Part shown: positions 41,092 to 60,192 of the stretch, piece by piece
Numbering within the stretch: the first letter of the stretch is position 1
How the letters are laid out: each line of letters begins with the position of its first letter
Sequence record: PQ471515.1
Direction: 5' to 3' (one strand)
Length of the DNA stretch: 64,000 nucleotides
Translations under genes and position numbers: made by a program
Notes under the pieces: generated by a model
Told to the model about the DNA's origin: nothing
The model's input: only the letters and a program-made list of their open reading frames with translations
Database searches by the model: none

Positions 41092-41742
41092 ATGAATAAA
41101 AGAAGTAAGTTCTATCAAGAATATTTCACTAAACAGAAACGATTCACAAAAAAATACTTTACATCATCCCACCGACCAGTTGCAAGTTACAAACGTCCTA
41201 ATACTAACTATCTTACTGGTGGCAAGTTTAGTGCAAAGTTCGAATTACTTATGCGTGAAAAGAATATCAAGATGCATTACGCAGAGACGAGAAAAAACTC
41301 ATCAATTATTTGCTCTGATTTTCTTGAGTACGGTTGCTTAACTTATAAATTCAATGATGTATATTTGTATATTGATGTTGATTGTAACAGTACTCTTATG
41401 TTTGAGATTTCAATTCACCCAAATCACAACCGTTATATAAACATTAACTTGATTGATAAAGTACTGATTGGTATATCTAGTACTGATGGTGGTGGATTTG
41501 AATTTATTGCTTCAAAATATGATGAAGATTTCGTACTTTACCCAGTACTTGATGATGTGAAAGATATTCTCAATTCATTAAAAGGAAGTCAATACAAATT
41601 ATCTGAAGAACAGCTATTTCAGTACTCACTTATTCATGATGATATCGAGATATACTTAGAGTGTGCGAGAATATTGGAGTATCTTTATAATGAACTAACA
41701 ACAACTGGTAAAGTGACTGCATTCACATTATATAATATGTAA
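41092..41742 (+). CDS. Hypothetical protein, EE-FQ family with basic N-terminus
   Basis: SEEQLFQYSLIHD motif; GAGG SD; only + strand gene in the array. Confidence 0.7.
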   Translation: MNKRSKFYQEYFTKQKRFTKKYFTSSHRPVASYKRPNTNYLTGGKFSAKFELLMREKNIKMHYAETRKNSSIICSDFLEYGCLTYKFNDVYLYIDVDCNSTLMFEISIHPNHNRYININLIDKVLIGISSTDGGGFEFIASKYDEDFVLYPVLDDVKDILNSLKGSQYKLSEEQLFQYSLIHDDIEIYLECARILEYLYNELTTTGKVTAFTLYNM

Positions 41743-45203: not shown

Positions 45204-45220
45204 AATTCCCTCCTTTATTC

Positions 45221-45267
45221 TTTATACTATATTTAATCAAAAAGAAAAGCCAGTACTCTGTACTGGC
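45221..45267 (-). promoter_or_regulatory. Terminator + late promoter cassette
   Basis: GCCAGTAC/GTACTGGC hairpin, T-tract, TAAATA-TAG-TATAAA. Confidence 0.75.
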
Positions 45268-45273
45268 ACTATA

Positions 45274-46623
45274 TTACAACAAATGTATTTCTGTGAGTGT
45301 TTGATATGTTACACCGTTGTACACACCTCTCCAATATACCTTACCTTCAGTACTAACCACTAATAATCCATATGTTGTAAACCCAAGAGTACCACCAACA
45401 TACATAGCATCTTTGATTTTAATACCAATGTCTTCATATGTAAATGAAGCGACTGCTCCCGCTTGCCATGAAGGACTAGCATAGTAATCACTATAAACAC
45501 CATGTGCTTTATATATTGATGTTGTTCCGGGTTCAAAAATTACAGTTCCACAGTAGTTCATTCGTATTTTGGTACTGGATGAAGTTGGTACATTTATACC
45601 TACATCATCTTTAATCCCTGTAGTTAGGACGTTAAAACCACCCGCTACACGGTTGACGTCATCCGCACCGATTAGAAACATACCAACGTTGTAGCCCATA
45701 TAATACACACTACTTGTACCATTCCAGAAAGAAAAACCACCACCATTACCACAGCGATATAGTTGTGAATTTGAGCAGTACATCATGCCTTCGTTTGTTG
45801 CATCAAAATCATCTGCTGTTCCGATTACAGCCACTGTAGTCCACGTTTTAATCACTTGGTTTGCACTAGCTGGTTTTTGTATACCATATCGTATATTATA
45901 TCCCTTACCTACGATTGTACCATCTTCTAATTTGGCATAAAGTACAGGTCTATTACCAACAAAATACACATTATTATGTGACATGTCTATTGTGCATCTT
46001 AATGAAACTGCTTTTTGTGTCAATTGATTATCTTTAGTAAAAGAAGTAAAGTAGTAATCTGATGTGGAGTTGTTTATTAAACCTTGAATCGACAAACCCA
46101 TATACCAGATTTCACCATTAGTGTTCAATGCTGCCAAAATACAACTATATTTTGAAGTGTATGCTGGGGTTAATGATGTTGCTGGACCTTTATCATATCC
46201 ACCACAGAATACCATTTCCACAACTTCACCTACGTTAGAAAAATAAGAAGATACATTTATAAAACCATTTGTTATAAAAGGTGCTGTAGTTATACTTGAA
46301 TGTGTGAATATTCCATTTGCATATACACCACAAAAATGATATGAACCATCATTATCTTTAACTATTATTCCATTTGATAGTAGCCAAAAATTGTTTACAT
46401 TTTTTCGTACTAATTCAATTCCTGTACCATTGGTTGGTGTTATACCAAAAGAAACATATTTTGTTTGACCAATACCATATAAATTTCCATTTGATGCTAA
46501 TATTGCACCAAACCAATTACCACCACCATTCCTATCATGACCCATACCAATGGAGTCGAATTTCTTCACAGTAGAGGCTTCAACTTTATTTCCGTACTTA
46601 ATCATTCTCGCAAAAGGTAACAT
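45274..46623 (-). CDS. MLPF-tag protein 13, divergent RCC1-like
   Basis: MLPFARMIKYGN at 46623 (track start lies in the promoter); ASNGNLYGIG, LNTNGEIWYMG. Confidence 0.7.
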   Translation of the reverse strand: MLPFARMIKYGNKVEASTVKKFDSIGMGHDRNGGGNWFGAILASNGNLYGIGQTKYVSFGITPTNGTGIELVRKNVNNFWLLSNGIIVKDNDGSYHFCGVYANGIFTHSSITTAPFITNGFINVSSYFSNVGEVVEMVFCGGYDKGPATSLTPAYTSKYSCILAALNTNGEIWYMGLSIQGLINNSTSDYYFTSFTKDNQLTQKAVSLRCTIDMSHNNVYFVGNRPVLYAKLEDGTIVGKGYNIRYGIQKPASANQVIKTWTTVAVIGTADDFDATNEGMMYCSNSQLYRCGNGGGFSFWNGTSSVYYMGYNVGMFLIGADDVNRVAGGFNVLTTGIKDDVGINVPTSSSTKIRMNYCGTVIFEPGTTSIYKAHGVYSDYYASPSWQAGAVASFTYEDIGIKIKDAMYVGGTLGFTTYGLLVVSTEGKVYWRGVYNGVTYQTLTEIHLL

Positions 46624-46639
46624 ATTTCCTCCTTTATTC

Positions 46640-46686
46640 ATTATACTATATTTAATCAAAAAGAAAAACCAGCACTCAAGTACTGT
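46640..46686 (-). promoter_or_regulatory. Terminator + late promoter cassette
   Basis: Imperfect hairpin, T-tract, TAAATA-TAG-TATAAT. Confidence 0.7.
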
Positions 46687-46694
46687 CCTATATT

Positions 46695-47432
46695 TTAGAC
46701 TGAATTGTTAGGATAATATCTCCCACGTCCCCATATTATTCGCACAGCACCACCACCAGCAGCCGTATAAGAAGAATTATCCCATATACTACCACCACCA
46801 CCATACCTCTTACCAGCACCACCACTACCAGCACCACCATTATATGAACCATCGTAGCTACCACCAATACCATTAGCACCTTGAACAATGATACCAGTAC
46901 CACCACCCGTACCAATGAACGAGGTATTATAGAATGCACCACCACCACCGCCACCGCCAGCACCATTTTCACCAGTGATTGCATTTCCGTTACCACCTTT
47001 ACCAGTGTAGCCACCAGCACCACCACCAATGACTGCACCACCACTTAAACCAGTGTTGCCACCATTACCACCACCATCATTAATAGCGTTAGCAGCTTTT
47101 CCACCTAGTCCACCAACCGTATATGCACCAGTGAAGCTAACACATAGTTTTTCAGTTCCACGATATAAACCGTTTTCAACTGCTGTAGTAGTGTTGGGAT
47201 GTGTAAGAGAAACACTTAAGTACTCACCACCAGAAACCGGAATATTATTACGCCACGATAAGCCGCCACCAGCACCACGTTGACCACCCGGAGAAATAAC
47301 ACATACTGATATTTCGGTAACGCCAGCAGGAACTGTAAATTGTGTTGTTCCTATTGTCGTGATTAATTGTTCACCATGTGGCTTATATTCAATTTTATTC
47401 CCGAACTTAACCATTCTTGCAAAAGGTAACAT
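46695..47432 (-). CDS. MLPF-tag protein 12, glycine-rich domain
   Basis: MLPFARMVKFGN; GTTQFTVPAGVTEI and GAGGGGGG runs typical of phage fibre Gly-rich domains. Confidence 0.75.
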   Translation of the reverse strand: MLPFARMVKFGNKIEYKPHGEQLITTIGTTQFTVPAGVTEISVCVISPGGQRGAGGGLSWRNNIPVSGGEYLSVSLTHPNTTTAVENGLYRGTEKLCVSFTGAYTVGGLGGKAANAINDGGGNGGNTGLSGGAVIGGGAGGYTGKGGNGNAITGENGAGGGGGGGAFYNTSFIGTGGGTGIIVQGANGIGGSYDGSYNGGAGSGGAGKRYGGGGSIWDNSSYTAAGGGAVRIIWGRGRYYPNNSV

Positions 47433-47449
47433 AATTCCCTCCTTTATTC

Positions 47450-47496
47450 ATTATACTATATTTAACCAAAAAGAAAAGCCAGTACAGAGTACTGGC
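47450..47496 (-). promoter_or_regulatory. Terminator + late promoter cassette
   Basis: GCCAGTAC/GTACTGGC hairpin, T-tract, TAAATA-TAG-TATAAT. Confidence 0.75.
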
Positions 47497-47502
47497 ATTG
47501 TA

Positions 47503-48636
47503 TTAAGGTTTATTTTTATAATTAATTTCTACATAGTTACGTTGTGTTCCAGTATATCCTGGAACATTCCCTATATTTCCATTACCTGCACCAAACAGAC
47601 GTTCTCCGACTGCAAAATATGTCCCATAGAAACAACCATCAAACACAGGAACATCATTATAATTTGATATGTAATTATCCATTGAATCCATTCTAGTGTA
47701 TGTAGTCAGAGTTACATTTGTACCTATACCATATGCACCATAAGGGTTAGTACCAGCAACATAATACCCAGTGGGTGTACATATTACTGGTGAATTTGCC
47801 CCTGATCTCGTGTGGATAAATCTAAATGTACCTTCAGGTACTGGTGCTTCTTTACTGAATAATGTTGTAGCTACTACTGGGTAATCAATACCATAACTAT
47901 TACCACTCAACCACGTTTTACCATCACTATCTTTGAATAATGAACAGGATTGTGTGCATCCGAACAGATTCAAATTGGTTACATTTGGAAATTTACTAAT
48001 TTGTGTATATACCAGAACTGTGGTTGCGGCAGCACTACCAAGTTGTCCACGACCATTATCACCCGCACTGTACATGTACCCATCGGTCTTTAATATTATA
48101 CTAGCGTTTCCTAAAATATCAAAATCAACAACATCCGTTTGTGTTAATGTAGCTATAGGATAACGAAAATTCACTGCCTCACCAGTACCAAATTGACAAT
48201 TGGTGTTTACCCCACATCCATATAAGTTGCCGTTTTGCATTAATATAAACAAACCTGTTGTCATTTTAATTTTCTTAATATTAAGAATATCTATATCTTG
48301 GAATATGTGTGTTACATTTACAAATGTGGTTGAGTTAACAGTACTTGAACCATAATAAGAACCGTTCCCGCTACCAAAGAATTCATCGCCTTTTCTGTAC
48401 ATTGCACATAGACTGCCACCCCATACATCATCAACTCCAGTGTCAATTTGAATAACTGAAGTAACACTAGTTGTTGCACCAGTGCCAAGTTCACCACCTG
48501 AATTGAATCCAAAACCATACAAATCTCCACTTTCGGTGAGCACCAAAACACTGTTATTGGTTGTGCATGAAATCTTTTTGATATTATTAGATGGTCTTTT
48601 ATTTCCGTACTTAACCATTCTTGCAAAAGGTAACAT
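47503..48636 (-). CDS. MLPF-tag protein 11, RCC1-like
   Basis: MLPFARMVKYGN; YSAGDNGRGQLGS, YGFGFNSGGELGTG. Confidence 0.8.
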   Translation of the reverse strand: MLPFARMVKYGNKRPSNNIKKISCTTNNSVLVLTESGDLYGFGFNSGGELGTGATTSVTSVIQIDTGVDDVWGGSLCAMYRKGDEFFGSGNGSYYGSSTVNSTTFVNVTHIFQDIDILNIKKIKMTTGLFILMQNGNLYGCGVNTNCQFGTGEAVNFRYPIATLTQTDVVDFDILGNASIILKTDGYMYSAGDNGRGQLGSAAATTVLVYTQISKFPNVTNLNLFGCTQSCSLFKDSDGKTWLSGNSYGIDYPVVATTLFSKEAPVPEGTFRFIHTRSGANSPVICTPTGYYVAGTNPYGAYGIGTNVTLTTYTRMDSMDNYISNYNDVPVFDGCFYGTYFAVGERLFGAGNGNIGNVPGYTGTQRNYVEINYKNKP

Positions 48637-48653
48637 ATTTCCCTCCTTTATTC

Positions 48654-48700
48654 ATTATACTATATTTAATCAAAAAGAAAAGCCAGTATCAAGTACTGGC
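48654..48700 (-). promoter_or_regulatory. Terminator + late promoter cassette
   Basis: GCCAGTA/TACTGGC hairpin, T-tract, TAAATA-TAG-TATAAT. Confidence 0.75.
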
Positions 48701-48714
48701 ATAGTTTTATAGTA

Positions 48715-49824
48715 TCATTTCGGCATTGTAATTGCAGACCATGAGTTCGTGGTAATAGGACCTGGCACATACAAAAAAGAACCACAAGCATAAATTTGAT
48801 TATTACCATCAAATACTATACTAAAATGTGCACATGTGTATAATGCTGATTTTTCTGGGTTGTAATTATCTAAAGTTAGTGTATTGGTGAATCTACTCAA
48901 ACTACCACCAGAACCATTTCTACCAAATTCACCAGTACTATATATCTTTCCTTCGGTTGTTGCGTACATATTAACACGTGAAGTTGTACTTGATTTTGAT
49001 ATTTTATGTATCTTACTATCAATAGTAGTGGAGTTAAATGCAAATGGATATAATAGTGTGTTCGTTGTAATACCGTTACCAAGTTGACCAACATACTGCC
49101 AACCTGCGTTGTATATATTGCTGGCTGAATAAGCAAGAGTACCAGTACTGTTACCACCAAACAGTTTAACACTGGTTAACCTGCTTACTAGTGTAGTATA
49201 CTGTCCTGAACTTACGCCAAGTGAACCATACTCACTACTCCCACAACCGAGAAGTTCACCATTTGATGTTAATATTAATGTGTTATTCTGTGTACCCAAT
49301 ATATCAAGGACTGTATTAGCTCCGGTATTAATAACTGAAACAAAAGTACTCTGAGCCGTGGAATACCCACCACCGAGTGAATAGTTACCATTCATGCCTC
49401 TACCATAAACAATCGAACCACTAGCATCAACGTAGTGCATTGTATCTGCACCAATTGATATCATTTTAATATTAGATATATGTGGAAATGAAGAAGTAAC
49501 ATTCAAACCACCCAACGGAATCATAGTATTTCCTGTGCCTAATTGTGTGGTAACTCCATGCATTATGAATTCTTCACCCTTGATATAAAGAATATTGTAC
49601 GCCCCAGCCCATGCATCAGTAACACCTTCTGAAATTAATATCCAAGTATTTCTTGTTGCTGTATTTGTAACGTTTAACTGAAAATACGAATTAACCCCAC
49701 AACCATAAAGTGAGCCATCGCCATAGAGGACGTACAAATTATCAAGACCGCACAGTACTTTCTTTATCTTTGGAGCTTCAGGTGCAATATTCCCGTAATC
49801 AAACATTCTAACAAATGGTAACAT
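48715..49824 (-). CDS. MLPF-tag protein 10, RCC1-like; close paralog of 57861-58970
   Basis: MLPFVRMFDYGN; YNAGWQYVGQLGNG. Confidence 0.8.
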   Translation of the reverse strand: MLPFVRMFDYGNIAPEAPKIKKVLCGLDNLYVLYGDGSLYGCGVNSYFQLNVTNTATRNTWILISEGVTDAWAGAYNILYIKGEEFIMHGVTTQLGTGNTMIPLGGLNVTSSFPHISNIKMISIGADTMHYVDASGSIVYGRGMNGNYSLGGGYSTAQSTFVSVINTGANTVLDILGTQNNTLILTSNGELLGCGSSEYGSLGVSSGQYTTLVSRLTSVKLFGGNSTGTLAYSASNIYNAGWQYVGQLGNGITTNTLLYPFAFNSTTIDSKIHKISKSSTTSRVNMYATTEGKIYSTGEFGRNGSGGSLSRFTNTLTLDNYNPEKSALYTCAHFSIVFDGNNQIYACGSFLYVPGPITTNSWSAITMPK

Positions 49825-49833
49825 AATTTCTCC

Positions 49834-50724
49834 TTAATATGTCTTATGAACTGCATTGCCCTTTGCGTTAATAGTTCCACCAAAAAATGTATACACCGTA
49901 GATGTTTTACCATCACTAATCACTTCTATTCCTATCGCAAATGATACCGAAGGAACACTCACAGTACTGATCATAACCCATGAATTAGTGTTAGTATCAT
50001 AATATCCAACATTACCACCCCTGAATAAATAAATCCTTTCATTAAAATAACACAAATACGGATTGGATGATCCTGTCGTTGATACCGGCACTGAACCAGC
50101 GTACTTAGTAAAGATTTCAGTACTTACATTGTATATGTATAAGTCATTACCATAAACAATACTAATAGAATTTGTTTTTTCATTATACGCAACACATCCA
50201 CAATACATTACCCAAGAATAACCACTCGGCATAGTCTTCGTAAGTATTACTTTCGTATCTAAGTCAATTATATAAAATTTATTTACATTACCACCAAATA
50301 CATACATCTTAGACCCAACTAAACATGATGCAATATTGTATACACTGCTAACCGTACTAGAACCCCATGAGTACCTCGTTCCGTCGGTTCCATATACACT
50401 CATTAATTCACTCGGTCCAGAACCACCAAATATATACATCCTACCATTATAGTACTCCATTGTTCCTGCGTTGTGCGTGGAATCTATGGTAACTAGTGTA
50501 CTAAAATCATTCAGTACTGGATTATACCTGTAAATCATTAAACCATCAATATTTCCATCAGTGGTAGTACCTCGTGTACAGTATATGTAAGTTTGATCTG
50601 TACACGTCAACGGATAACGCATAGGTGATGGTATTGTGCCAGTAGGTTCTAATAGTTCATATATCCCACTAAATCCATTATTGATTGTATTCCCATAACT
50701 CAACATCCTTCCAAATGGTAACAT
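49834..50724 (-). CDS. MLPF-tag protein 9, Kelch-repeat beta-propeller
   Basis: MLPFGRMLSYGN; GRMYIFGG, SKMYVFGG, IYLFRGG...YDT..NSW. Confidence 0.8.
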   Translation of the reverse strand: MLPFGRMLSYGNTINNGFSGIYELLEPTGTIPSPMRYPLTCTDQTYIYCTRGTTTDGNIDGLMIYRYNPVLNDFSTLVTIDSTHNAGTMEYYNGRMYIFGGSGPSELMSVYGTDGTRYSWGSSTVSSVYNIASCLVGSKMYVFGGNVNKFYIIDLDTKVILTKTMPSGYSWVMYCGCVAYNEKTNSISIVYGNDLYIYNVSTEIFTKYAGSVPVSTTGSSNPYLCYFNERIYLFRGGNVGYYDTNTNSWVMISTVSVPSVSFAIGIEVISDGKTSTVYTFFGGTINAKGNAVHKTY

Positions 50725-50742
50725 CTCTCTCTCCTAAAAAGA

Positions 50743-50791
50743 ATTATAATGTATTTAATCAAAAAAGCCCAGCACTTATTCAGTACTGAGC
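50743..50791 (-). promoter_or_regulatory. Terminator + late promoter cassette
   Basis: Imperfect hairpin, T6, TAAATA-CAT-TATAAT. Confidence 0.7.
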
Positions 50792-50797
50792 AGATTA

Positions 50798-51745
50798 TTA
50801 TGTGAACTTATACATAACAGTGCTTCTATCGTTCGCACCACCACCACCAAAAAATGAATACGCTTCACGTTTTCCAGCAATATAACCGTACCATGTGTAG
50901 TAGGCAGAAGAAGTGTTAGTTCTTATACGTGTCCATGTCCCATTAGGTTCACGTTTAGTGACAAATGTACCCAAAATATAATATAATGTTCCATCGACAA
51001 TTATGAATCCTGCACCAGACGAAGTAATAGGAGAAAAAGATGGAATTACTTGCGTGAACGCATTTGTTGACGGATCATAATTATACATTGTACTACCTAT
51101 TACTAGATATACTAACCCTTCATAAAAAATAACACTAGGGGATTCAACGTTTAGTGTTGGGGTAGTTATTCCAGATCTAACAGTTCTCCATACTTTGGTA
51201 ATATAATTATATGCAACAATAACTTCCTTTACACTACTAGACTGACCACCAAAATAAAAAATTTCATTCCCAATACATACTCCTGCATGGTTATACCTCG
51301 CAGGTGGTCTTCCACTATCATTTGAAATAATTTCTATTGAATTAGTACCAACCTTGTGACGAAAGAATTGAGAAGATGCGTTATTGCTTGAGTTCGCCCC
51401 ACCAAAACCATATATATATCCATCAGGTGTATAAACCAATGGGGTAGATCTTAAATTTCTCAAATTACTAGAAGGAATCTGATAAAACGTATTATCTGAC
51501 GCATTATAATAAAAGAAATCATTTAAGTAAGTAGATCCAGTTCCAGTTATACCTCCTCCAGTTCCAGTTATACCTCCATAAAAATATACATATGGAAACT
51601 CTTCTACATTTGTTGAACATGATGACGTATAATTCCTTCCGGGTGGATTATACCCTGTACTATTGAATGTTATCTGTTCTGATATTCCCAAAAATACGCT
51701 AGGAGCAATATTCCCATAATCAAACATTCTTACAAAAGGTAACAT
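50798..51745 (-). CDS. MLPF-tag protein 8, Kelch-repeat beta-propeller
   Basis: MLPFVRMFDYGN; PPARYNHAGVCIGNEIFYFGG, YIYGFGG, YDPSTNAF. Confidence 0.85.
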   Translation of the reverse strand: MLPFVRMFDYGNIAPSVFLGISEQITFNSTGYNPPGRNYTSSCSTNVEEFPYVYFYGGITGTGGGITGTGSTYLNDFFYYNASDNTFYQIPSSNLRNLRSTPLVYTPDGYIYGFGGANSSNNASSQFFRHKVGTNSIEIISNDSGRPPARYNHAGVCIGNEIFYFGGQSSSVKEVIVAYNYITKVWRTVRSGITTPTLNVESPSVIFYEGLVYLVIGSTMYNYDPSTNAFTQVIPSFSPITSSGAGFIIVDGTLYYILGTFVTKREPNGTWTRIRTNTSSAYYTWYGYIAGKREAYSFFGGGGANDRSTVMYKFT

Positions 51746-51755
51746 ATTTCTCTCC

Positions 51756-52886
51756 TTAATTTAATAATGCCCCTGGCAAATCCACTTTGACGAATTGTGC
51801 ATATGCTGAGGAATTTTGATCAAAGTTTGGTCCCAATCCATAAAATGAGCTAATGCCGTCTTCATTTGTGTATATGATATAAACGTTCTTTACATCATTT
51901 CCGCATATAAATCGAATGTCTTTCGTTTGTGTTCCCGCTGGAACATTACGAAGGTTAACAACGCCATTACTTGCATTGTTATCAGCCGACGCAATTGGTA
52001 ATTGATTTTGACCATATTGACCACGCATATTTTTTGCATCTAAACCAAACACAGTATCTGATACCGCACCAACTTTCAAAAATGAACCAAAACTATTATT
52101 GAATGACTTTGGAAATGTACCACTATAAACACTTCTCCCATCTGATAATACCGCTGAACTGAATTTCCCGCTATTCGATATGGCAAATTCATTGTAAGGA
52201 AGTGTACCCATTTTGGTATATACAGAATATGAATTAGTGGAAGTATTATCAATAATCTTATTACCATTATATCCAATACCATACTGGTATCCGGCAGCAT
52301 CTTGAACTATACACAAAGGACCACTTGGGGTTTGTGTCAACGAAACAACACGTTCAACTTGTATATCACCAAATGTATTTCTTCGCCATGTTCTATCTAT
52401 TATAGTACTAGTATTACCCAAAGATAATGCCACACTATATAATAGATTGTTTTCAGTAAAAATGGCAACATAATATGCGTGGTTAATAACTTGCTTCATC
52501 CCAGCATCAATAACTTCCTGTGGAATATGATCAGTAACATCCAACCAATCAAGGTTAGATGATGCAATATCTGGAGTACTGAATTTGTCAAATCTAGTTG
52601 AGCCACAAACTAGCACTCTATCATCATTTGTCAAAGCCACTGTGCTAGTCTGCATATTAGAACTGAATGATTTAACATTACTAATGTTAGACTTGTACCA
52701 ACCCTTATCAGCAGCACCCACCGTGAATCCGGTTCCCATTGATCCACTTGTACTTGTACCATAAGCCCACATCTCACCACTATATGTTAGTGCCATACAG
52801 TGGCTTCCATTTGCTTGGAAATCCTTTATACCAGTGGGAGCAGCCACTGTATTCCCATAATCAAACATTCTAACAAAAGGTAACAT
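51756..52886 (-). CDS. MLPF-tag protein 7, divergent RCC1-like
   Basis: MLPFVRMFDYGN at 52886 with GGAG SD; ALTYSGEMWAYGTSTSGSMGTG. Confidence 0.7.
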   Translation of the reverse strand: MLPFVRMFDYGNTVAAPTGIKDFQANGSHCMALTYSGEMWAYGTSTSGSMGTGFTVGAADKGWYKSNISNVKSFSSNMQTSTVALTNDDRVLVCGSTRFDKFSTPDIASSNLDWLDVTDHIPQEVIDAGMKQVINHAYYVAIFTENNLLYSVALSLGNTSTIIDRTWRRNTFGDIQVERVVSLTQTPSGPLCIVQDAAGYQYGIGYNGNKIIDNTSTNSYSVYTKMGTLPYNEFAISNSGKFSSAVLSDGRSVYSGTFPKSFNNSFGSFLKVGAVSDTVFGLDAKNMRGQYGQNQLPIASADNNASNGVVNLRNVPAGTQTKDIRFICGNDVKNVYIIYTNEDGISSFYGLGPNFDQNSSAYAQFVKVDLPGALLN

Positions 52887-52907
52887 AACTAAAATCTCCA
52901 TATAATA

Positions 52908-52956
52908 ATTATAATGTATTTACAAAAAAATACCAGTACGTATTTCAGTACTGGTA
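52908..52956 (-). promoter_or_regulatory. Terminator + late promoter cassette
   Basis: TACCAGTAC/GTACTGGTA hairpin, T7, TAAATA-CAT-TATAAT. Confidence 0.75.
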
Positions 52957-52961
52957 TAATG

Positions 52962-54143
52962 TTATGGTAAAATAATAGCTTGTAACGAACTCATACCCAA
53001 TGTTGGGACACTCGCCTGTGGTGCTGGTGAATTCAATTTTGGTGATGAAACCGCATATGACATTCCTGAACCCAAATCTGGATCAAAAACTACAGCACAA
53101 TAATTCCCACTATATATAAGTCCATTCTTGTATCCTTGTGCACTTTGAATGCATTTCGTGAACGTACCAATATCTGTAGTGGCATTTATTAAGTTCCTCC
53201 CACGATAACCGCAGGTGTATATGAAATTATCATCGCCTATGTACATACTAGAATCCCCAGAAGAACTACATAGATACGACATATAAGCACGCATGTTTTT
53301 AGGAGCAACTGACAATGTACCTGCATAGAATTTATTATTCGAACCCGTAATATCACCATCACCCAATGCACCAAAACTTCCCCAGCCAGTACCGTAATAT
53401 CTCTTATCACTCAAAAATATAATACAGTTGTTATTACACATCTTGATTTGATATATCAATGAAGGATCAACCCCAGGGAATGATTCAGTGAATGTTAGAA
53501 CAGCCGGATCAGTACTAGCATTACATTGATGATATGTATTAGTACCAGCGGACAAGATTGTTCCATTAGCTAACAGAATTCTCGCAGTACCAGTACCAGC
53601 AGTACAAGCAACTGCACTTCCTGCACTTCCGGTGTATATTTGTCTGAAAGTAAAGAAACCAACAGTTTTACTTCCCTGCCCACTCCAACCAGTATTATCA
53701 ACTCCACACGCCCATACTGAACCATCTTGCATGATCATCATTACACCAAAGCGTTCTATTGAAATATAAACAATCTTCGTTGTATCAACTGCACTAAATC
53801 TAGAAGTTATATCAGTCCATACCTTAACACTTACCGCCGTCGCACTGGAAGTAGGATCTTCACCAGCTATCATTATCCTCCCATTGTTAGTAAGATACAT
53901 TGTCTGACTATAACCAGTACTACAAAACTTAACACTATCAGTCTCTGGAACTTTTAACCACTCGTTGTAACGTGTTACGTTAGTGTTATTACCTAACTGA
54001 TAATAGTTATTCATCCCAGATACATATAACACACCATCCTTTATTAAACTATAAGTCGCACTATAGTCACTACAGGTATAACGTGTACCCACAGGTCGCT
54101 CAACGACGTTCCCATAATCAAACAATCTAACAAAAGGTAACAT
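52962..54143 (-). CDS. MLPF-tag protein 6, RCC1-like
   Basis: MLPFVRLFDYGN; YVSGMNNYYQLGN, YGTGWGSFGALGDG. Confidence 0.75.
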   Translation of the reverse strand: MLPFVRLFDYGNVVERPVGTRYTCSDYSATYSLIKDGVLYVSGMNNYYQLGNNTNVTRYNEWLKVPETDSVKFCSTGYSQTMYLTNNGRIMIAGEDPTSSATAVSVKVWTDITSRFSAVDTTKIVYISIERFGVMMIMQDGSVWACGVDNTGWSGQGSKTVGFFTFRQIYTGSAGSAVACTAGTGTARILLANGTILSAGTNTYHQCNASTDPAVLTFTESFPGVDPSLIYQIKMCNNNCIIFLSDKRYYGTGWGSFGALGDGDITGSNNKFYAGTLSVAPKNMRAYMSYLCSSSGDSSMYIGDDNFIYTCGYRGRNLINATTDIGTFTKCIQSAQGYKNGLIYSGNYCAVVFDPDLGSGMSYAVSSPKLNSPAPQASVPTLGMSSLQAIILP

Positions 54144-54163
54144 AATAAAATCTCCGTAATTAA

Positions 54164-54208
54164 ATTATATAGTATTTACAAAAAATACCAGTACATATTT
54201 CAGTACTG
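54164..54208 (-). promoter_or_regulatory. Terminator + late promoter cassette
   Basis: CAGTAC/GTACTG hairpin, T6, TAAATA-CTA-TATAAT. Confidence 0.7.
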
Positions 54209-54216
54209 ACCTATTA

Positions 54217-55338
54217 TTAAAAGGGCAACGGTAACTCAGTAAAAGTACTTACGTCCGGTAAACCATACATTGAATTAGCATCACCACAGTAATACCACTT
54301 CGTAGAATCATGTACCACCGATAAACGCTGTGCACATAACACTTCCTGTATGTCATTAAACACCATCGGGACTAACTCATATGTATCCGCAAATGAAGAT
54401 ACACCACCACTCGCATGAAAAGTATTCGTCCCAGCATAAAATAACTGATTAGTGTTCTTACCCACAGCAAATGTCATCAATATCCCATCATTCGCCCATA
54501 AAGAAGAAAACTTATCAACACTACCAGAAAGCTCTGTGTAAGTACTCGTAATGGCACTCGCAGCCGCCGCATTACCCATCTGTTTATTCAAGTTCTGTCC
54601 AGCAATAAAATATCTCGTGCGTGCACTAGAATCAGTATATAATAACCCAGTGTTCGTAGTCATCATTCCAATGTCCTTAATCGTCATACCAGTCTGTGAA
54701 TAACTTAGATACGAAGTTAAATTAACATTATTACCCAACGAACCGTTATCACTCATACCACAACGATGTAATATACCACTTGTATCAACGTAGATTGTAC
54801 TAACTAAACTCGTATACAACTCTTGTACATTATTCGCAATAAACACAGCAGTCGCCTTATTACTAACCCCACCAAATGATAGGTTATTATCAAATCCCTT
54901 AGCGTATAATTGATTATTAGTAGTCAATAATCCAATCGTGAAATAAGACATTTTCATATCCCTTACTGTACTCAAATCTACTGCTCCAAATTGGTGCGTA
55001 ACATCTGTCCATGTGAAAATCTGTGCACTACCAACACCACCCGTTTCAAACCATTTGTCACCACAGTACAATATGCGATTACCCTTAGTAAAGATAACTG
55101 TTACCAATCCACTACCACACGCAAACTTTACATCACTTCTAACCTTCGTCCAATTAAGTACATAGGTAGTGGTGTTATTACCTATACCTAACTTGCCATA
55201 ACGGTTATAACCACGCACCCACAAATCACCACTCTTAGTAATTAATAGTAATGCGTCTCCTGTACTTATTATTCGAAATCCCGAACTAGGATCAGGTGTA
55301 ATATTTCCATAATCAAACAATCTAACAAAAGGTAACAT
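54217..55338 (-). CDS. MLPF-tag protein 5, RCC1-like
   Basis: MLPFVRLFDYGN; LWVRGYNRYGKLGIG. Confidence 0.75.
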   Translation of the reverse strand: MLPFVRLFDYGNITPDPSSGFRIISTGDALLLITKSGDLWVRGYNRYGKLGIGNNTTTYVLNWTKVRSDVKFACGSGLVTVIFTKGNRILYCGDKWFETGGVGSAQIFTWTDVTHQFGAVDLSTVRDMKMSYFTIGLLTTNNQLYAKGFDNNLSFGGVSNKATAVFIANNVQELYTSLVSTIYVDTSGILHRCGMSDNGSLGNNVNLTSYLSYSQTGMTIKDIGMMTTNTGLLYTDSSARTRYFIAGQNLNKQMGNAAAASAITSTYTELSGSVDKFSSLWANDGILMTFAVGKNTNQLFYAGTNTFHASGGVSSFADTYELVPMVFNDIQEVLCAQRLSVVHDSTKWYYCGDANSMYGLPDVSTFTELPLPF

Positions 55339-55347
55339 GATTTTCTC

Positions 55348-56541
55348 CTATGATTGCCATAACTGCGTTGGCATTAATGTTAATGTTTTAATTACGGAAG
55401 TACCATCCGGTAAGTTACCACCTGAACCGTTAAAGCCCCCACATGCATATAATTTATAATCTTTAGTTATAATTATTGTTCTGGACCAGTCTTTGGATGC
55501 CATAAGAACATTGTCATATCCACCCTGTATCGCACTTAAAGAAAACGCCCCCCACGAAGTAATTACTGTTGTATTTCCCGTCCCTTCTTGACCATATGTA
55601 TTGATGCCTGCACTCCTGACATATGATGGGTATTGAGCCATAGGTGCACCAATTGTTGAGTTACCCATATTACTAGGACACAGGAAACCATCACTAATAT
55701 TCACTATAACCTGTGAATTCTGAACTGTAGTTAATTGGTTTGTAGTTGAAGTAGTACCATTCCCAGCTTGTCCAGAATTGTTTCTACCACTCCAGTACAC
55801 CCTACCGGCAGTGAACCACCAGGTAACATCATAAGTAGCACTTATATAATCGACGTTGGATCGTATTAATTTATTAGTAAAAACGTATGAGCTAGTCCCA
55901 CCACCACTTTCACCAAAGTTATCCTTACCACAAAACCATGCTTCTTTATTTGTTTTGAGATAGTGCGTACCCTGTAATGAACACGCCAATTGAGAAACTT
56001 CACCCATACCAGTAACAACTGTTAGTACTGGAATGGAATTTTGGTTACCTGTTCCACATTCGGCATTTGCATTTTTACCACAAACAACTACTCTTCCATC
56101 GTGTAGTAATATTCTAGTACTTTCACCTATATGTACACTCTTGATTAAATTAGCGTGTACATTTATTTTGTTAAATGCGGCAGTAACATCAGTCCATGTT
56201 CTAAAATAACCATTAACTGGAGTTGCATCTCCATAATCGGGGAATGCTACAGTATTCCCTGTGAAATATATTCTATTATCCAAGTCAATCATCAATGAGC
56301 CATGAACGCCTAACCAAAAGGCTGCACAGTGCGTTGCCAGTACTGTAAAAGTAGAAACTGTCGATTGATTCCCTAGACCTAATTGGCTCAAGTTATTACC
56401 ACCATAACCGTATAGTGTATTCGTGGGCTTATGTAGATACATAGCATTAGTATAATGTTGCTGTAAAACATCAGTGAACTCAACTGGATCAGGAATAGGC
56501 AGTTTATTCCCGTATTTAACCATTCTTGCAAAAGGTAACAT
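55348..56541 (-). CDS. MLPF-tag protein 4, RCC1-like
   Basis: MLPFARMVKYGN; WFCGKDNFGESG, WSGRNNSGQAGNG, SAGINTYGQEGTG. Confidence 0.8.
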   Translation of the reverse strand: MLPFARMVKYGNKLPIPDPVEFTDVLQQHYTNAMYLHKPTNTLYGYGGNNLSQLGLGNQSTVSTFTVLATHCAAFWLGVHGSLMIDLDNRIYFTGNTVAFPDYGDATPVNGYFRTWTDVTAAFNKINVHANLIKSVHIGESTRILLHDGRVVVCGKNANAECGTGNQNSIPVLTVVTGMGEVSQLACSLQGTHYLKTNKEAWFCGKDNFGESGGGTSSYVFTNKLIRSNVDYISATYDVTWWFTAGRVYWSGRNNSGQAGNGTTSTTNQLTTVQNSQVIVNISDGFLCPSNMGNSTIGAPMAQYPSYVRSAGINTYGQEGTGNTTVITSWGAFSLSAIQGGYDNVLMASKDWSRTIIITKDYKLYACGGFNGSGGNLPDGTSVIKTLTLMPTQLWQS

Positions 56542-56558
56542 ATTTCCCTCCTTTATTC

Positions 56559-56607
56559 ATTATACTATATTTAATCAAAAATAAATGCCAGTACACAGTA
56601 CTGGCAT
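56559..56607 (-). promoter_or_regulatory. Terminator + late promoter cassette
   Basis: ATGCCAGTAC/GTACTGGCAT hairpin, T-tract, TAAATA-TAG-TATAAT. Confidence 0.75.
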
Positions 56608-56611
56608 AATA

Positions 56612-57790
56612 TTATCGGTTAAATTTAAAATCTGTTATGTGTGTCCATGTATGATTTAATGGTGTACTCATTGGTGTAAAGCCAGCAGGGTCTGACAAAG
56701 CTGTACCACGTGCGTACATAAATTGATTGCCAGTACAATCCATTATAGCATAAGAACGTTTTGCTGTGCCACATTTGAACCCAACTGCACTACTTGGGGT
56801 CGGTAATACTTCAAATGTAGGTGCATTTGAACTACCACCCCCATCTTTTGTTCCAGCTATGTACAGAACTCCATTAGTATCAATGATTAAGTTAGTCCAA
56901 TATACTTGTTCTCGTCCAGCAAAAAAATATGTTAAATCACCTGGTACAAATGGTAACGTTCCTTTATATATTGTGGTATTAACATCCACTGGTGCACCAG
57001 CTACACCCCATGAACTCATATAGTTTCTCCCACTTGCGTAGAATGTAGTTCCTTTACCGTAAAGTATTAATGTTGCTAGACTTGTTCGCATTGCATTATA
57101 TTCAAACTCAGGATCATCAGTAGCGTCCTTAAAAATCTGTGTCCATGTTGTTATATTGCCAGTAGTTGTAACACCCATTTGATAATAATAATTATCACCA
57201 GTAGCATAGAATTCTTTAGGGCCAGTTTGTACAATTGCATTCCTATTAGTTAACCAAAAATCTAATGTATTAGTCTTGATCTTGGTTGGTGTGTAATTCG
57301 CCACGGTATTTCCTTTTCCGAAATAACCATTAGCGTTATTTCCATGACCCCATAAATCACCATTAGTTGTGCGTAGGAATAATGTACCAATATTGAATCC
57401 AACTTTTTCTATAGTACTTATGTCAATACCAACAGTCGTGTACTTCGTTGTAAAATCTTGAAAAGTACTCCAATAATTAGATGAACCATTAAACATGGTT
57501 TGTTTACCAGTGTACTTCACTTTATTATCTTTAGTGATAAGTAATGTCCCCCACACTGACGCGAACATCAACTTAACATTTTCCATAACAAAGTATGGCT
57601 TACCGTATGCTGACGCGGTAGAGTTCAAACCTAATAGTTGTCCATTATTACTACAACCCCATACTTCGCCGTTATCCAAAAGCATCAACATAGTAGGTTT
57701 GCCAGATGATACATCCAAAAAGAAATCTTTTGGTGTTGGTACACCAGGTGTAATATTTCCATAATCAAACATTCTAACAAAAGGTAACAT
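56612..57790 (-). CDS. MLPF-tag protein 3, RCC1-like
   Basis: MLPFVRMFDYGN; LWGHGNNANGYFGKG, YATGDNYYYQMG. Confidence 0.75.
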   Translation of the reverse strand: MLPFVRMFDYGNITPGVPTPKDFFLDVSSGKPTMLMLLDNGEVWGCSNNGQLLGLNSTASAYGKPYFVMENVKLMFASVWGTLLITKDNKVKYTGKQTMFNGSSNYWSTFQDFTTKYTTVGIDISTIEKVGFNIGTLFLRTTNGDLWGHGNNANGYFGKGNTVANYTPTKIKTNTLDFWLTNRNAIVQTGPKEFYATGDNYYYQMGVTTTGNITTWTQIFKDATDDPEFEYNAMRTSLATLILYGKGTTFYASGRNYMSSWGVAGAPVDVNTTIYKGTLPFVPGDLTYFFAGREQVYWTNLIIDTNGVLYIAGTKDGGGSSNAPTFEVLPTPSSAVGFKCGTAKRSYAIMDCTGNQFMYARGTALSDPAGFTPMSTPLNHTWTHITDFKFNR

Positions 57791-57807
57791 ATTTCCCTCC
57801 TTTATTC

Positions 57808-57854
57808 ATTATACTATATTTAATCAAAAATAAAAGCCAGTATCAAGTACTGGC
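57808..57854 (-). promoter_or_regulatory. Terminator + late promoter cassette
   Basis: GCCAGTA/TACTGGC hairpin, T-tract, TAAATA-TAG-TATAAT. Confidence 0.75.
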
Positions 57855-57860
57855 ATCGTA

Positions 57861-58970
57861 TTACTTGGGTAATGGAATTGTGGTCCATCTATTTGCGGCA
57901 ACGTCACCTGGTACATATGTAGGACTACCACTTACAGCAATAGTTTCATTACCATCATATACAACACTGAAGTTTGTGCACGTATACAACGCTGCGGCAT
58001 CTGGATTGTAATTTTCAAGTGTTAGTGTATTGGTGAACAAATTCAATGCAGTAGTTGAGCCGTTTTTACCATATGCACCTGTAGTATATATCTTTCCTTC
58101 TGTTGTTGAGTACATATTAACATATGACCCAGATGATGATTTAGCAATTTTATCTATCTTGCTATCTATTGTTTTAGAGTTAAATTGAAATGGATATACC
58201 TGTACGTTAGTATCTAAACCATTTCCCAGTTCCCCATTTAACTGCCACCCTGTGTGGTACATTCCCGCATTTGTATATGCAAGCGTACTATACGCATTAC
58301 CACCCATTATTTTAGTGCCAGATAATTTTAAACCAAACGATGTCCACTTACCAGTTTCATTTCCTATGGAACCATAAGCACTTGTACCACACGCACGAAG
58401 CTCGCCATTTGACGTTAGAAGCACTGTATTATTAACGTTACCAAATATATCAATAACCTGATTAGTGCCATTATTCAGTACTGAAGTAAAAGTACTCTGT
58501 GAGTAAGTACTACCTGAACCAACAGAACCATTTGTGTTCATACCTCTTCCATATACAATTTTACCATCAGCACTAACATAGTGCATTGAATCAAAACCAA
58601 TGGATATCATTTTAATATCAGATATATCTGGAAATGAAGAAGTTACATCTACTCCACCTAGTGGAATTGTATTATTTCCTAAACCTAATGAGACATTAGT
58701 TCCGTGCATTATAAATTTATCTTCTTTAAAATATAAAATATTATATCCACCAGCCCATGCATTATTAACGCCATTTGTAATCAGTACCCATTTATTTTGT
58801 GTAGTAGTTCCAGTAATATTTAACTGTTGATAGTTATTGATTCCACAACCATATAGCGATCCATCACCATATAGTACATATAAATTATCATATCCTGCAA
58901 TAACTTTCTTTATTTTTTTGGGTACAGGTGCTACATTCCCATACTTTAACATTCTTCCAAAAGGTAACAT
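57861..58970 (-). CDS. MLPF-tag protein 2, RCC1-like; close paralog of 48715-49824
   Basis: MLPFGRMLKYGN; same 369 aa length and colinear sequence as protein 10. Confidence 0.8.
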   Translation of the reverse strand: MLPFGRMLKYGNVAPVPKKIKKVIAGYDNLYVLYGDGSLYGCGINNYQQLNITGTTTQNKWVLITNGVNNAWAGGYNILYFKEDKFIMHGTNVSLGLGNNTIPLGGVDVTSSFPDISDIKMISIGFDSMHYVSADGKIVYGRGMNTNGSVGSGSTYSQSTFTSVLNNGTNQVIDIFGNVNNTVLLTSNGELRACGTSAYGSIGNETGKWTSFGLKLSGTKIMGGNAYSTLAYTNAGMYHTGWQLNGELGNGLDTNVQVYPFQFNSKTIDSKIDKIAKSSSGSYVNMYSTTEGKIYTTGAYGKNGSTTALNLFTNTLTLENYNPDAAALYTCTNFSVVYDGNETIAVSGSPTYVPGDVAANRWTTIPLPK

Positions 58971-58987
58971 TATTTTCTCCTTTATTC

Positions 58988-59037
58988 ATTATACTATATT
59001 TAATACAAAAAGAAATGCCAGTACACAGTACTGGCAT
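58988..59037 (-). promoter_or_regulatory. Terminator + late promoter cassette
   Basis: ATGCCAGTAC/GTACTGGCAT hairpin, T-tract, TAAATA-TAG-TATAAT. Confidence 0.75.
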
Positions 59038-59043
59038 ATTAAT

Positions 59044-60192
59044 TCATTGTATAAATGACATATCTACTTCTGTATAATTAAGAACGTTCTGTCCAGAAAT
59101 ACCACCCATTACTACTATTGCAAGGCCACAATAATATAATTTTCCAGTATCCGTAAGTATAAGTGATCCAGATGGACTGCGTACCAAATCACACGAACTA
59201 TTAAAAGAAGTATAAGAAGGAGTATAGGAGTACTGATTATTATTATTACCAACACCTAATTGCCCAAACCCATTCGTTCCAGAAGCATATAGAACTTCAT
59301 CTGCTTTGACAATATGTGATGCCATGTTACCAACACAAGTATATAGAGTATAAACTCCTGAACTCAATAATGTCGGAGTTTTATATTGTATATCTGTAGA
59401 TGTAGAAGTACCACCTGTACCAAATTCGTTCCCATATTGTGCACCGAACTGTTTACCACAAGCGTACAAATTATTATCCGATTTGATAAAAAATGTACTC
59501 TGATAACTTACATTAAAATCTATAACATCCGAAGAAATCATCGTCACCCCAGTAATAGAAGTTTGATTACCCGTGCCCAACTGATAGTAATAGTTAAAAC
59601 CACAACCCCATAAAGTATTATCTTCTTTTAGGTATATGTTACCAACTGCCTTTTTAACCGAAGTTATAGTATCTATCCTTTTGAATGTGTTAAAAGAATT
59701 AATGTTTGTACCATCACCAAATGATGATAGGTTCGAGTTATTGTTCGCTCCACAACAATACAATGTACCATCGTTTGTTATCAAATTTACCTTCATATCA
59801 TAAAAACTACTCATGTACTTTATATCAGAAACATTAATACCACCTGATGTTATCCACGTGGTACAGTCCGTCCACAAAGTTTTTCTATCAGTTACACCAG
59901 TGAATGCCTTCGTGTTACCAGTGATAAAAACTTTTCCAGTACCTTTCTCTTCATACAATTGACAATCACTACTGTTATCTTCCAATAGAACTCGTTTAAC
60001 ATTCTCCGCACAAAGAATAAATTTACTCGATGCTACACCTGTACCAGTACCCCAATTCGTCGCAGAAGATGCATACAACTTATCAGTATAAGTATCATGA
60101 AGATACATAGAATCACTGGAATATATTTTAAAACGCCCTTCTTTCTCAGGTATAATATTCCCATAATCAAACATTCTAACAAAAGGTAACAT
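59044..60192 (-). CDS. MLPF-tag protein 1, RCC1-like
   Basis: MLPFVRMFDYGN at 60192 with GGAGG SD; LWGCGFNYYYQLGTG, YASGTNGFGQLGVG. Confidence 0.8.
   Translation of the reverse strand: MLPFVRMFDYGNIIPEKEGRFKIYSSDSMYLHDTYTDKLYASSATNWGTGTGVASSKFILCAENVKRVLLEDNSSDCQLYEEKGTGKVFITGNTKAFTGVTDRKTLWTDCTTWITSGGINVSDIKYMSSFYDMKVNLITNDGTLYCCGANNNSNLSSFGDGTNINSFNTFKRIDTITSVKKAVGNIYLKEDNTLWGCGFNYYYQLGTGNQTSITGVTMISSDVIDFNVSYQSTFFIKSDNNLYACGKQFGAQYGNEFGTGGTSTSTDIQYKTPTLLSSGVYTLYTCVGNMASHIVKADEVLYASGTNGFGQLGVGNNNNQYSYTPSYTSFNSSCDLVRSPSGSLILTDTGKLYYCGLAIVVMGGISGQNVLNYTEVDMSFIQ

Follow-up and report, generated by a model that had tools for sequence, protein, structure and literature searches.

Introduction

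Phage tail fibers and tailspikes combine conserved N-terminal anchor modules with exchangeable receptor-binding domains. The T-even phages reportedly also have polymorphic internal-protein (IP) loci with a conserved capsid-targeting sequence, a description said to go back to Repoila et al. in 1994. The diverse proteins of these loci share only their capsid-targeting leader (PMC3012670). In T4-type phages, the promoter-early stem-loop (PeSL) cassettes, which are conserved promoter/stem-loop elements of about 100 bp, serve as linkers for recombination, the crossovers having been mapped to the stretch from the -10 element to the ATG (Arbiol et al., 2010, PMC2839356; see also Comeau et al., 2014, PMC4122927). 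The present study deals with an array of 17 neighboring genes in a stretch of 64,000 nucleotides (nt) from sequence record PQ471515.1 (the whole of which is called the window below). The products of these genes begin with nearly the same 12-residue peptide (the tag) and continue into bodies (the cargos) showing only about 25% identity, a match on so many neighbors that is far beyond chance. Comparisons with related phages gave recombination junctions, chimeras, incongruent tag and cargo histories, and tag spectra specific to each genome. In our reading, recombination or conversion of a conserved block at the 5′ end of the genes re-pairs tags with cargos, the peptide may be a virion signal or anchor and its variants may be equivalent; we give this reading as a whole a probability of about 0.7.

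The array resembles the PeSL system in that a conserved composite intergenic element of about 100 bp (a terminator-like stem-loop, a promoter-like block and a Shine-Dalgarno site) is repeated in a hyperplastic region, where the elements flank non-core genes and homologous recombination inserts, deletes and replaces genes: there are 11 such cassettes in the window, and the insertions, deletions and replacements between relatives are bounded by them. It differs from that system in that the homology runs into the coding sequence (the 12-residue peptide and the linker), so that N-termini are re-paired too, in having no strong sigma-70 early promoter, in encoding virion proteins where PeSL genes are early ORFans, and in its lineage, which is Asteriusvirus (Rak2-like). 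With the T-even IP loci it has in common that unrelated virion proteins which evolve fast share only a short N-terminal leader that is conserved and regulatory sequences that resemble one another, and that the number, order and identity of these proteins vary among close relatives; the leader DNA of the IP loci has been proposed as a recombination site. Here the short leader stands on RCC1-like, Kelch, LamG-like, glycine-rich and unknown cargos. The MLPF leader nevertheless appears unrelated to the T4 leader and has no evident cleavage motif, and the cargos are beta-propellers and lectin-like domains of 25-45 kDa, whereas the IPs are small basic proteins. As in tail fibers and tailspikes, a conserved N-terminal attachment part precedes a variable binding part and recombination junctions lie at the boundary, but the anchor of the array consists of 12 residues that are disordered alone, the cargos are propellers of the monomer type and not trimeric fibers, and more than 10 copies are present, each with its own cassette. 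Since the sigma-70 early promoter is absent, the leader apparently unrelated and without an evident cleavage site, and the lineage different, the array is not a member of the PeSL or the T-even IP family, although it works like both.

The tagged genes and the tag peptide

The window is a region of an Asteriusvirus jumbo coliphage with 99.8% identity to Escherichia phage Turkey3, and it shows mosaic matches to 36 further jumbo phages of the Asteriusvirus type, about 350 kb in size (121Q, PBECO4, phAPEC6, and relatives). A six-frame motif scan identified 16 adjoining minus-strand genes at 41775-60192, all with the N-terminus M-L-P-F-x-R-[ML]-x-x-[YF]-G-N; a 17th gene, with a degenerate tag, lies at 39890-41014 (g1-g17 in Table 1). 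The array is therefore larger than the range 48715-58970 given in the original prediction, which had been drawn from the letters of this DNA and described the tags correctly within its bounds. According to Pfam, 13 of the bodies are RCC1-like and two are Kelch (g8 and g9), and two gave no match (g4 and g5). The bodies are 22-32% identical at the amino acid (aa) level in pairwise comparisons, apart from g7 and g15, which are both 369 aa long, colinear and gapless, and 61.5% identical.

Within 48715-58970, six tags are of the form V-R-[ML]-F-D (FVRMFDYGN in g7, g9, g10 and g14, FVRLFDYGN in g11 and g12), and there is one each of A-R-M-V-K (FARMVKYGN, g13), G-R-M-L-S (FGRMLSYGN, g8) and G-R-M-L-K (FGRMLKYGN, g15); the window further holds two minor variants, FARMIKYGN and FARMVKFGN. 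The tags, the coordinates, the colinear g7/g15 pair and the difference between the tags of the two Kelch genes are all present in the sequence as had been predicted. The three tag alleles of the prediction likewise match this range, but reflect the sampling of a single genome: about 30 variants were found across 12 related genomes. For this comparison the arrays of 12 further phages were fetched and 157 tagged open reading frames (ORFs) were extracted, which came to 137 genes in 42 cargo orthogroups after removal of a duplicate genome; CMSTMSU was excluded from all the counts because its ORFs are fragmented, and EC22.5-2 from the statistics as a duplicate of ECO103.

In the 137 genes, the tag varies little or not at all at positions 1-4, 6, and 10-12, and the residues found are A/V/G/T at position 5, M/L/I at position 7, V/F/L/I/M at position 8 and K/D/N/E/T/Q/R/S/M at position 9. 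The tag is thus a fixed frame with three tolerant positions (5, 8, and 9), and its variants form a continuum, not a set of discrete alleles. It is conserved as a protein, with synonymous variation at Tyr10 (TAC 71/TAT 62), Gly11 (GGG 99/GGA 38) and Arg6, and codons 13-15 (I-A-P) are semi-conserved too. The same peptide heads gp1 and gp2 of phage GAP32 and is also encoded at the start of genes in Yersinia phage fHe-Yen9-04 and in Xanthomonas phage XbC2, so that it is present in other genera too.

The tag was also carried by 74 ORFs of metagenomic contigs, on cargos including Kelch, RCC1-like, RCC1+Kelch double propellers, ConA-like/LamG, and unknown folds. On metagenomic jumbo-phage contigs, the double-propeller fusions are 667-690 aa long, ConA-like/LamG proteins bear the tag as well, and runs of four tagged genes occur (examples of tagged ORFs are L033:3341-5362, L039:7528-9531, L043:11752-13824, L043:9516-11742, and L028:3245-3976). 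A scan of IMG/VR gave phage 121Q as the sole match. Residues 1-40 matched no more than eight proteins in a word-indexed search, which is therefore unsuited to enumerating tagged proteins. A search of the literature found no paper mentioning the MLPF motif or describing the peptide, and the papers on phages UE-S1 and Sharanji do not mention the array genes.

The 5′ block as the substrate of recombination

A cassette of about 70 nt, of which there are two sequence types, precedes 11 of the genes, and five genes start 9-15 nt past the preceding stop. Each cassette consists of a GC-rich hairpin with a T-run, then an A/T-rich TAAATA...TATAAT block, and then a Shine-Dalgarno site. Terminator-like hairpins were found on the coding strand at all 11 intergenic cassettes, with 22 hits vs. 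8.5 ± 3.2 in shuffled sequences. In a sigma-70 promoter scan, by contrast, only 9-of-12 matches were obtained, at two cassettes, and hits were fewer overall than in the shuffles; no strong sigma-70-like early promoter was found at the cassettes, the TAAATA...TATAAT block having no -35 partner. Being an almost perfect palindrome, the hairpin, GCCAGTAC-nnn-GTACTGGC, scores as a terminator on either strand; copies lie for example at 41750-41768, 47478-47496, and 48682-48700, the first of them at the edge of the array beside a convergent plus-strand ORF.

Exact runs of 30-66 nt are common to the 5′ blocks, the longest extending from -40 to +26 and being shared by the blocks of g13 and g6, vs. a maximum of 16 nt between the cargo bodies, which leaves the block as the sole place in the array on which homologous recombination can act. 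The type of cassette is associated with the class of tag (chi-square P = 6e-5, uncorrected for relatedness), as expected if cassette and tag were often converted jointly. No dedicated diversity generator (diversity-generating retroelement, shufflon/invertase, or integron), with a gene for a reverse transcriptase or site-specific recombinase and its target repeats, was found at the locus, the screen having covered the 20-kb array only. The content of these 20 kb amounts to the tagged genes and one ORF of 216 aa without a Pfam match, and the repeats are direct.

Junctions between tag and cargo

The original prediction had based the case for recombination on pairs inside the window, and these proved unsuitable. 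The tags of g7 and g15 are identical at 29 of 36 nt and the rest of the two genes at 67% of the nt; the tags are more alike than the bodies, and at that divergence the three changed codons need no recombination, so that the pair is non-diagnostic. The two Kelch genes, g8 (GRMLS) and g9 (VRMFD), are only 23% identical over 214 aa and are ancient paralogues.

The evidence comes from the comparison between phages. In many orthologue pairs whose bodies are 95-99% identical at the nt level, 5-9 of the 36 tag nt differ and the upstream DNA is unrelated. The tag of g7 (VRMFD), for instance, differs from those of its orthologues phAPEC6 gp009 (ARMVK) and 121Q (TRMVK), with 6/36 differences from the former vs. 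2.6% in the cargo (binomial P = 3e-4). There are nine differences in 36 nt between g12 (VRLFD) and its EJP2 orthologue ARMMT (P = 1e-7), and g14 (VRMFD) and g16 (VRMFD) are likewise discordant in tag with SP27 TRMVK and phAPEC6 gp549 ARMIK, respectively. Given the divergence of the bodies, clusters of tag changes had binomial P values of 1e-4 to 1e-7, and the divergence of orthologue tags equals that of paralogue tags (4.3-5.0 differences per 36 nt). In 92 orthologue configurations with bodies at least 95% identical in nt and unrelated upstream DNA, mismatch fell from about 70% in the upstream DNA to 8-12% within the tag and 6% between +44 and +55, and reached a background of about 2% only at +56 (relative to the ATG), identity thus setting in at about +44 to +56; near-identity in the pairwise alignments begins between +36 and +60. 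The junction thus lies at the end of the nucleotide homology, as codons 13-15 are semi-conserved. These position-wise mismatch profiles replaced a two-rate change-point search, which had put the junction at -6 to -1 and merely marks the start of the block conserved in all copies. Two further estimators were dropped: that of the last mismatch, blurred by background divergence, and a 3′ profile anchored on the stop codon, blurred by small differences in cassette length.

Exchanges inside the tag were also observed. BF17 and ECO103 have the same neighbor and the same cargo and differ at four nt in codons 8-11, and the tag of EJP2_20960 is a chimera, with the 3′ codons of its own cargo lineage and a core of the EJP2 type. 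Gene order and content differ among the 12 phages, with the junctions in the cassette or the tag. On a maximum-likelihood tree of 118 RCC1-type cargos, from which the first 20 residues had been removed, no fewer than 53 changes of the tag core are needed (25 would be the minimum; label shuffles 76.9 ± 2.3) and no fewer than 28 of the charge class of position 9 (minimum 2; shuffles 49.2 ± 2.6). Both counts lie between the minimum and the shuffles, and the histories of tag and cargo are therefore incongruent and yet not independent. With more genomes included, the trees did not become congruent and a chimeric tag was present, so that neither of the two refuting observations named in the prediction was made. 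The 92 configurations, the chimeras, the tag-only patches and the incongruence bear out the predicted re-pairing of tags and cargos by recombination in the 5′ block, with no dedicated recombinase gene in the array.

A simple link between the tag and the upstream gene was ruled out, the core being identical in 20/84 comparisons with the same neighbor and an unrelated cargo, which points to conversion of the block and concerted evolution. Of the 22 allele groups considered (at least three members each), nine contain near-identical cargos with different tags, and in all but one of these several nt were replaced together; in the exception, the glycine-rich group, the changes could be separate point substitutions.

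The spectra of tags differ from genome to genome: phAPEC6, 121Q, and SP27 have no acidic tags, Turkey5 has seven VRLFD, and EJP2 has ARIMT and ARILE besides five VRMLE. When two non-orthologous genes come from one genome, the core is the same in 22% of the pairs, vs. 13% when they come from different genomes (permutation null 13.5 ± 1.2%, maximum 17.6%). In EJP2, the synonymous Arg6 codon AGG is present in 8/13 tags vs. 2/124 elsewhere (Fisher P = 2e-8), an excess which selection at the protein level leaves unexplained and which points to gene conversion among copies. Genome-specific spectra of this kind amount to concerted evolution.

Folds of the cargos and association with the virion

Pfam families RCC1 and RCC1_2 scored above the cut-off in several array genes, the 13-gene cargo having the features of a seven-bladed RCC1-like fold, and several Pfam Kelch families did so in g8 and g9. 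The AlphaFold model of g7 (predicted local distance difference test, pLDDT, 87.8; predicted template modeling score, pTM, 0.88) is a seven-bladed propeller, outside which residues 1-19 lie without secondary structure, residues 1-11 scoring below 50; in the model, then, the tag extends freely from the fold and does not belong to it. Foldseek gave this model TM-scores of 0.78-0.80 with UVR8 and 0.70-0.73 with the RCC1-like domains of RPGR and HERC2. The Kelch model was of low confidence (pLDDT 60.7). Identity of the array propellers to eukaryotic RCC1-fold proteins is about 20%.

The DNA-ordering role suggested by the phAPEC6 authors was drawn from the RCC1 name alone (PMC7247149). The chromatin or DNA-condensation label, which would imply a Ran guanine nucleotide exchange factor or nucleosome-binding function, is carried over from the name of the fold. 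Array genes bear further database labels such as 'E3 ubiquitin-protein ligase HERC1', 'NS1A-binding protein', 'X-linked retinitis pigmentosa GTPase regulator', 'BNR repeat', 'S-layer protein', 'Ig domain-containing protein' and 'DNA condensation protein'; these are transfers of fold names with no functional basis.

The presence of tagged proteins in virions has been shown in the literature by three independent proteomes. By mass spectrometry, the virion proteome of phAPEC6 includes the array proteins gp003, 005, 006, 007, 009, 010, 549, and 551 (PMC7247149), GAP32 gp1 was found in the virion (PMC5259590), and tagged JP4 proteins are listed in the virion table obtained with liquid chromatography coupled to tandem mass spectrometry (PMC12648861 supplement). 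The virions of phAPEC6 bear hairs and fibers on the tail and capsid, to which no protein has been assigned. Phage CBB has tail whiskers and no RCC1 homologue, which means that the propellers cannot themselves be the whiskers. With their binding-type folds and proline-rich tether, the proteins are somewhat more likely to be displayed on the surface than packaged inside.

Proposed mechanism and alternatives

The array would encode interchangeable binding-type proteins (RCC1-like and Kelch propellers and two unknown folds), each with the free 12-residue peptide MLPF-x-R-[MLI]-x-x-[YF]-G-N and, after it, a short linker rich in proline, the peptide acting as the signal or anchor that brings them into the virion. 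The 36-45 nt coding for the peptide and, in 11 genes, the cassette of about 70 nt would be the sole long homology between paralogues about 25% identical, at which general homologous recombination and short-patch gene conversion could act, both within a genome and between co-infecting relatives. Exchange at the block would move, delete or replace whole cargos, so that order and content vary between phages, and would re-pair tags and cargos at junctions that lie within the tag or at the block's 3′ edge, while conversion would homogenize the tags inside a genome and point substitutions at the three tolerant positions would supply further variants. The main product would probably be the re-assortment, gain and loss of cargos, re-pairing and homogenization of tags being by-products. 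The tag variants are most likely equivalent in function.

Several results weigh against this reading or restrict it. The tag is unchanged in 9/22 allele groups, in several of them across up to five upstream neighbors, and a tag that stays constant across differing neighbors places the exchange upstream, in the cassette; another 4/22 groups vary by single substitutions, so that mutation contributes. Overall, about half of the allele groups keep tag and cargo together through changes of neighbor, exchange close to the junction being frequent, not the rule. The 5-residue core is common to 47% of the orthologue pairs across genomes vs. 13% of unrelated genes across genomes. The term 'uncoupled' in the original prediction is too strong for these figures. 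The genome comparisons are non-independent events, and the permutation tests ignore relatedness. The first 12 nt of the coding sequence (ATGTTACCWTTT) are near-invariant, other genera included: ATGTTACC(T/A)TTT is kept in almost all of the 137 Asteriusvirus genes (TTA 136/137, CCT 135/137, TTT 136/137) as well as in GAP32, fHe-Yen9-04, and XbC2. This exceeds what the amino acids need, and part of the conservation may lie at the level of the nucleotides or of translation initiation. Tagged proteins are low in the virion proteomes (1-5 peptides), and the docking or anchoring role of the peptide is putative. In two metagenome contig sets, finally, breaks, depth spikes and short joints occur at the blocks and are indistinguishable from the cross-mapping of repeats.

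Assembly mis-joins at repeats would indeed mimic junctions within the block, and the junctions might all be artefacts of short reads joined wrongly at the repeated 5′ blocks: the unitigs of both metagenome runs break at every block, with spikes in depth, and the exact repeats reach 66 nt. Yet several arrangements recur, with the same tags, in independently sequenced isolates (phAPEC6/SP27/121Q, BF17/fEgEco12, and the window/Turkey3), tag-only differences between identical flanks cannot result from a mis-join, and paired reads of 150-250 nt span the blocks, so that we consider this explanation highly improbable. Point mutation alone, at three weakly constrained codons, has just as little in its favor, although the in-window g7/g15 pair is fully compatible with it and single-nt variants do occur within groups (FD to FN, M to L at position 7, A to V, GRMIR/GRMIM/GRIIR). 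As the sole cause of the tag differences it is already contradicted by the 5-9 clustered changes per 36 nt beside bodies differing by 2-4% (P = 1e-4 to 1e-7), by the coincidence of these clusters with a changed upstream context and their restoring of variants present in paralogues, by the synonymous AGG common to eight non-orthologous EJP2 tags, and by the variation in gene order.

Two other views accept recombination or a virion signal and differ on what the tag is for. The classes A-VK, V-FD, and G-L(K/S) might be address labels for different virion sites, with selection for recombination into new combinations, and the prediction had suggested along these lines that K or D at position 9 could direct proteins to different docking sites. 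Two classes do dominate in the window, BF17, and fEgEco12, with few intermediates, F8 goes with D9 in 43/46 cases, and the genome-specific spectra could reflect co-evolution with receptors. The co-variation of positions 8 and 9 can, however, be explained by the linkage of adjacent codons; the roughly 30 variants include GRMVK, VRMVK, TRMVK, ARMMN, VRMLE, and GRMFK, all four gametes being seen, and position 9 takes nine residues and position 8 any aliphatic or aromatic one. Moreover, phAPEC6, 121Q, and SP27, without acidic tags, carry orthologues of FD-tagged cargos, and K-tagged phAPEC6 gp009, the g7 orthologue, is in the virion proteome; identical cargos with K- or D-type tags, the K-tagged ones in virions, leave separate docking sites unsupported, and address labels are in our view unlikely. 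A better case, if still a doubtful one, can be made for a capsid-targeting leader as in the T-even internal proteins, with cargos packed in the head and injected as anti-defense or takeover effectors. In its favor, a short leader is conserved on hypervariable proteins that are associated with the virion and unrelated to one another, head morphogenesis is T4-like, the phAPEC6 proteome includes a prohead protease, and cryo-electron microscopy has revealed an inner body in the capsid. Set against this are the lack of any common Glu-type cleavage motif behind the tag (position 15 or 16 is E in just 42/137 tagged genes), the lectin- or adaptor-type folds (beta-propellers, ConA-like/LamG) with a proline-rich tether, which are more typical of displayed modules, and the unassigned hairs and fibers on both tail and capsid of phAPEC6.

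Recombination and conversion of the block, with a peptide whose variants are equivalent, remain our preferred reading. A more far-reaching proposal, which we regard as improbable, is that MLPF...YGN is a general signal for virion loading or display in Rak2-like jumbo phages, the array being a recombinase-free cassette system with K and D as orthogonal channels. If it were true, any protein gaining the tag by recombination at the 5′ block would join the particle and the array would try out lectin-like binding modules, and the tag spectra of the lineages (K-only in phAPEC6/121Q/SP27, mixed here) would have co-evolved with one docking receptor or two.

Layout of the locus

Table 1. Tagged genes, their cassettes and adjoining features in the window.
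Feature	Position	Strand	Remarks
g17, RCC1-like, degenerate tag MLPFVLLFDYGN (Arg6 to Leu)	39890..41014	-	Plus-strand ORF between g17 and main array
ORF of 216 aa, no Pfam match	41092..41742	+	
g1, RCC1-like, tag MLPFARMVKYGN	41775..42911	-	No cassette; g2 stop 15 nt before
g2, RCC1-like, tag MLPFVRMFDYGN	42927..44072	-	No cassette; gap 12 nt
g3, RCC1-like, tag MLPFARMVKYGN	44085..45203	-	Type-1 cassette upstream
Cassette of g3, type 1	45204..45273	-	
g4, 449 aa, no Pfam match, tag MLPFARMIKYGN	45274..46623	-	Mechanical ORF call begins upstream at 46659
Cassette of g4, type 1	46624..46694	-	
g5, 245 aa, glycine-rich, no Pfam match, tag MLPFARMVKFGN	46695..47432	-	
Cassette of g5, type 1	47433..47502	-	
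g6, RCC1-like, tag MLPFARMVKYGN	47503..48636	-	Type-1 cassette
Cassette of g6, type 1	48637..48714	-	Block and tag at 12 Turkey3 genome sites, in 43 phage records
g7, RCC1-like seven-bladed propeller, tag MLPFVRMFDYGN	48715..49824	-	No cassette; gap 9 nt; orthologue phAPEC6 gp009 (ARMVK)
g8, Kelch, tag MLPFGRMLSYGN	49834..50724	-	Type-2 cassette
Cassette of g8, type 2	50725..50797	-	
g9, Kelch, tag MLPFVRMFDYGN	50798..51745	-	No cassette; gap 10 nt
g10, RCC1-like, tag MLPFVRMFDYGN	51756..52886	-	Type-2 cassette
Cassette of g10, type 2	52887..52961	-	
g11, RCC1-like, tag MLPFVRLFDYGN	52962..54143	-	Type-2 cassette
Cassette of g11, type 2	54144..54216	-	
g12, RCC1-like, tag MLPFVRLFDYGN	54217..55338	-	No cassette; gap 9 nt; EJP2 orthologue (97% nt) ARMMT
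g13, RCC1-like, tag MLPFARMVKYGN	55348..56541	-	Type-1 cassette
Cassette of g13, type 1	56542..56611	-	66-nt exact run (-40 to +26) common with g6 block
g14, RCC1-like, tag MLPFVRMFDYGN	56612..57790	-	Type-1 cassette; SP27 orthologue (98% nt) TRMVK
Cassette of g14, type 1	57791..57860	-	
g15, RCC1-like, tag MLPFGRMLKYGN	57861..58970	-	Type-1 cassette; 61% aa to g7; ECO103 and fEgEco12 orthologues VRMVK
Cassette of g15, type 1	58971..59043	-	Terminator-like hairpin and T-run, TAAATA...TATAAT, Shine-Dalgarno
g16, RCC1-like, tag MLPFVRMFDYGN, first gene of the array	59044..60192	-	phAPEC6 gp549 orthologue (97% nt) ARMIK
Second array, at least 12 small ORFs of 60-82 aa	60295..63896	+	Diverged paralogue sets

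The plus-strand ORF that parts g17 from the array is conserved together with g17 in BF17 and fEgEco12. In-frame upstream starts at 46624-46659, 52887-52901, and 60193-60210 (minus strand) pull mechanical ORF calls ahead of the tag; in the example MNKGGN-MLPF, NKGGN is the translated Shine-Dalgarno region, and the same mis-start is found in JP4_581 in the JP4 proteome table. The small ORFs of the second array, which lies beyond the tagged genes, gave 11 significant BLASTP pairs, and many of them end in ...VLKLI.. or ...LIFKY. The sign of the GC skew flips at about 40 kb, where the coding strand goes from plus to minus. In the phAPEC6 record, two tagged genes at the start (L009:3-2360 and L010:3679-6036) duplicate gp550 and gp551 at the end, which is either the overlap of a circularized record or part of a terminal repeat running through the array.

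Significance

Asteriusvirus phages have repeatedly been isolated as candidates for therapy, and the array is a main site of difference between similar isolates. The shared N-terminal peptide and recombination would explain this mosaicism, and recognition of the tag corrects the annotation of the genes, their start codons included. If the 12-residue peptide suffices for loading onto or into a jumbo-phage particle, it would offer a compact tag with uses in phage display or the delivery of cargo. The locus would extend the principle of the PeSL and internal-protein systems, in which conserved regulatory and leader sequences serve as recombination linkers, to a second, unrelated group of large phages.

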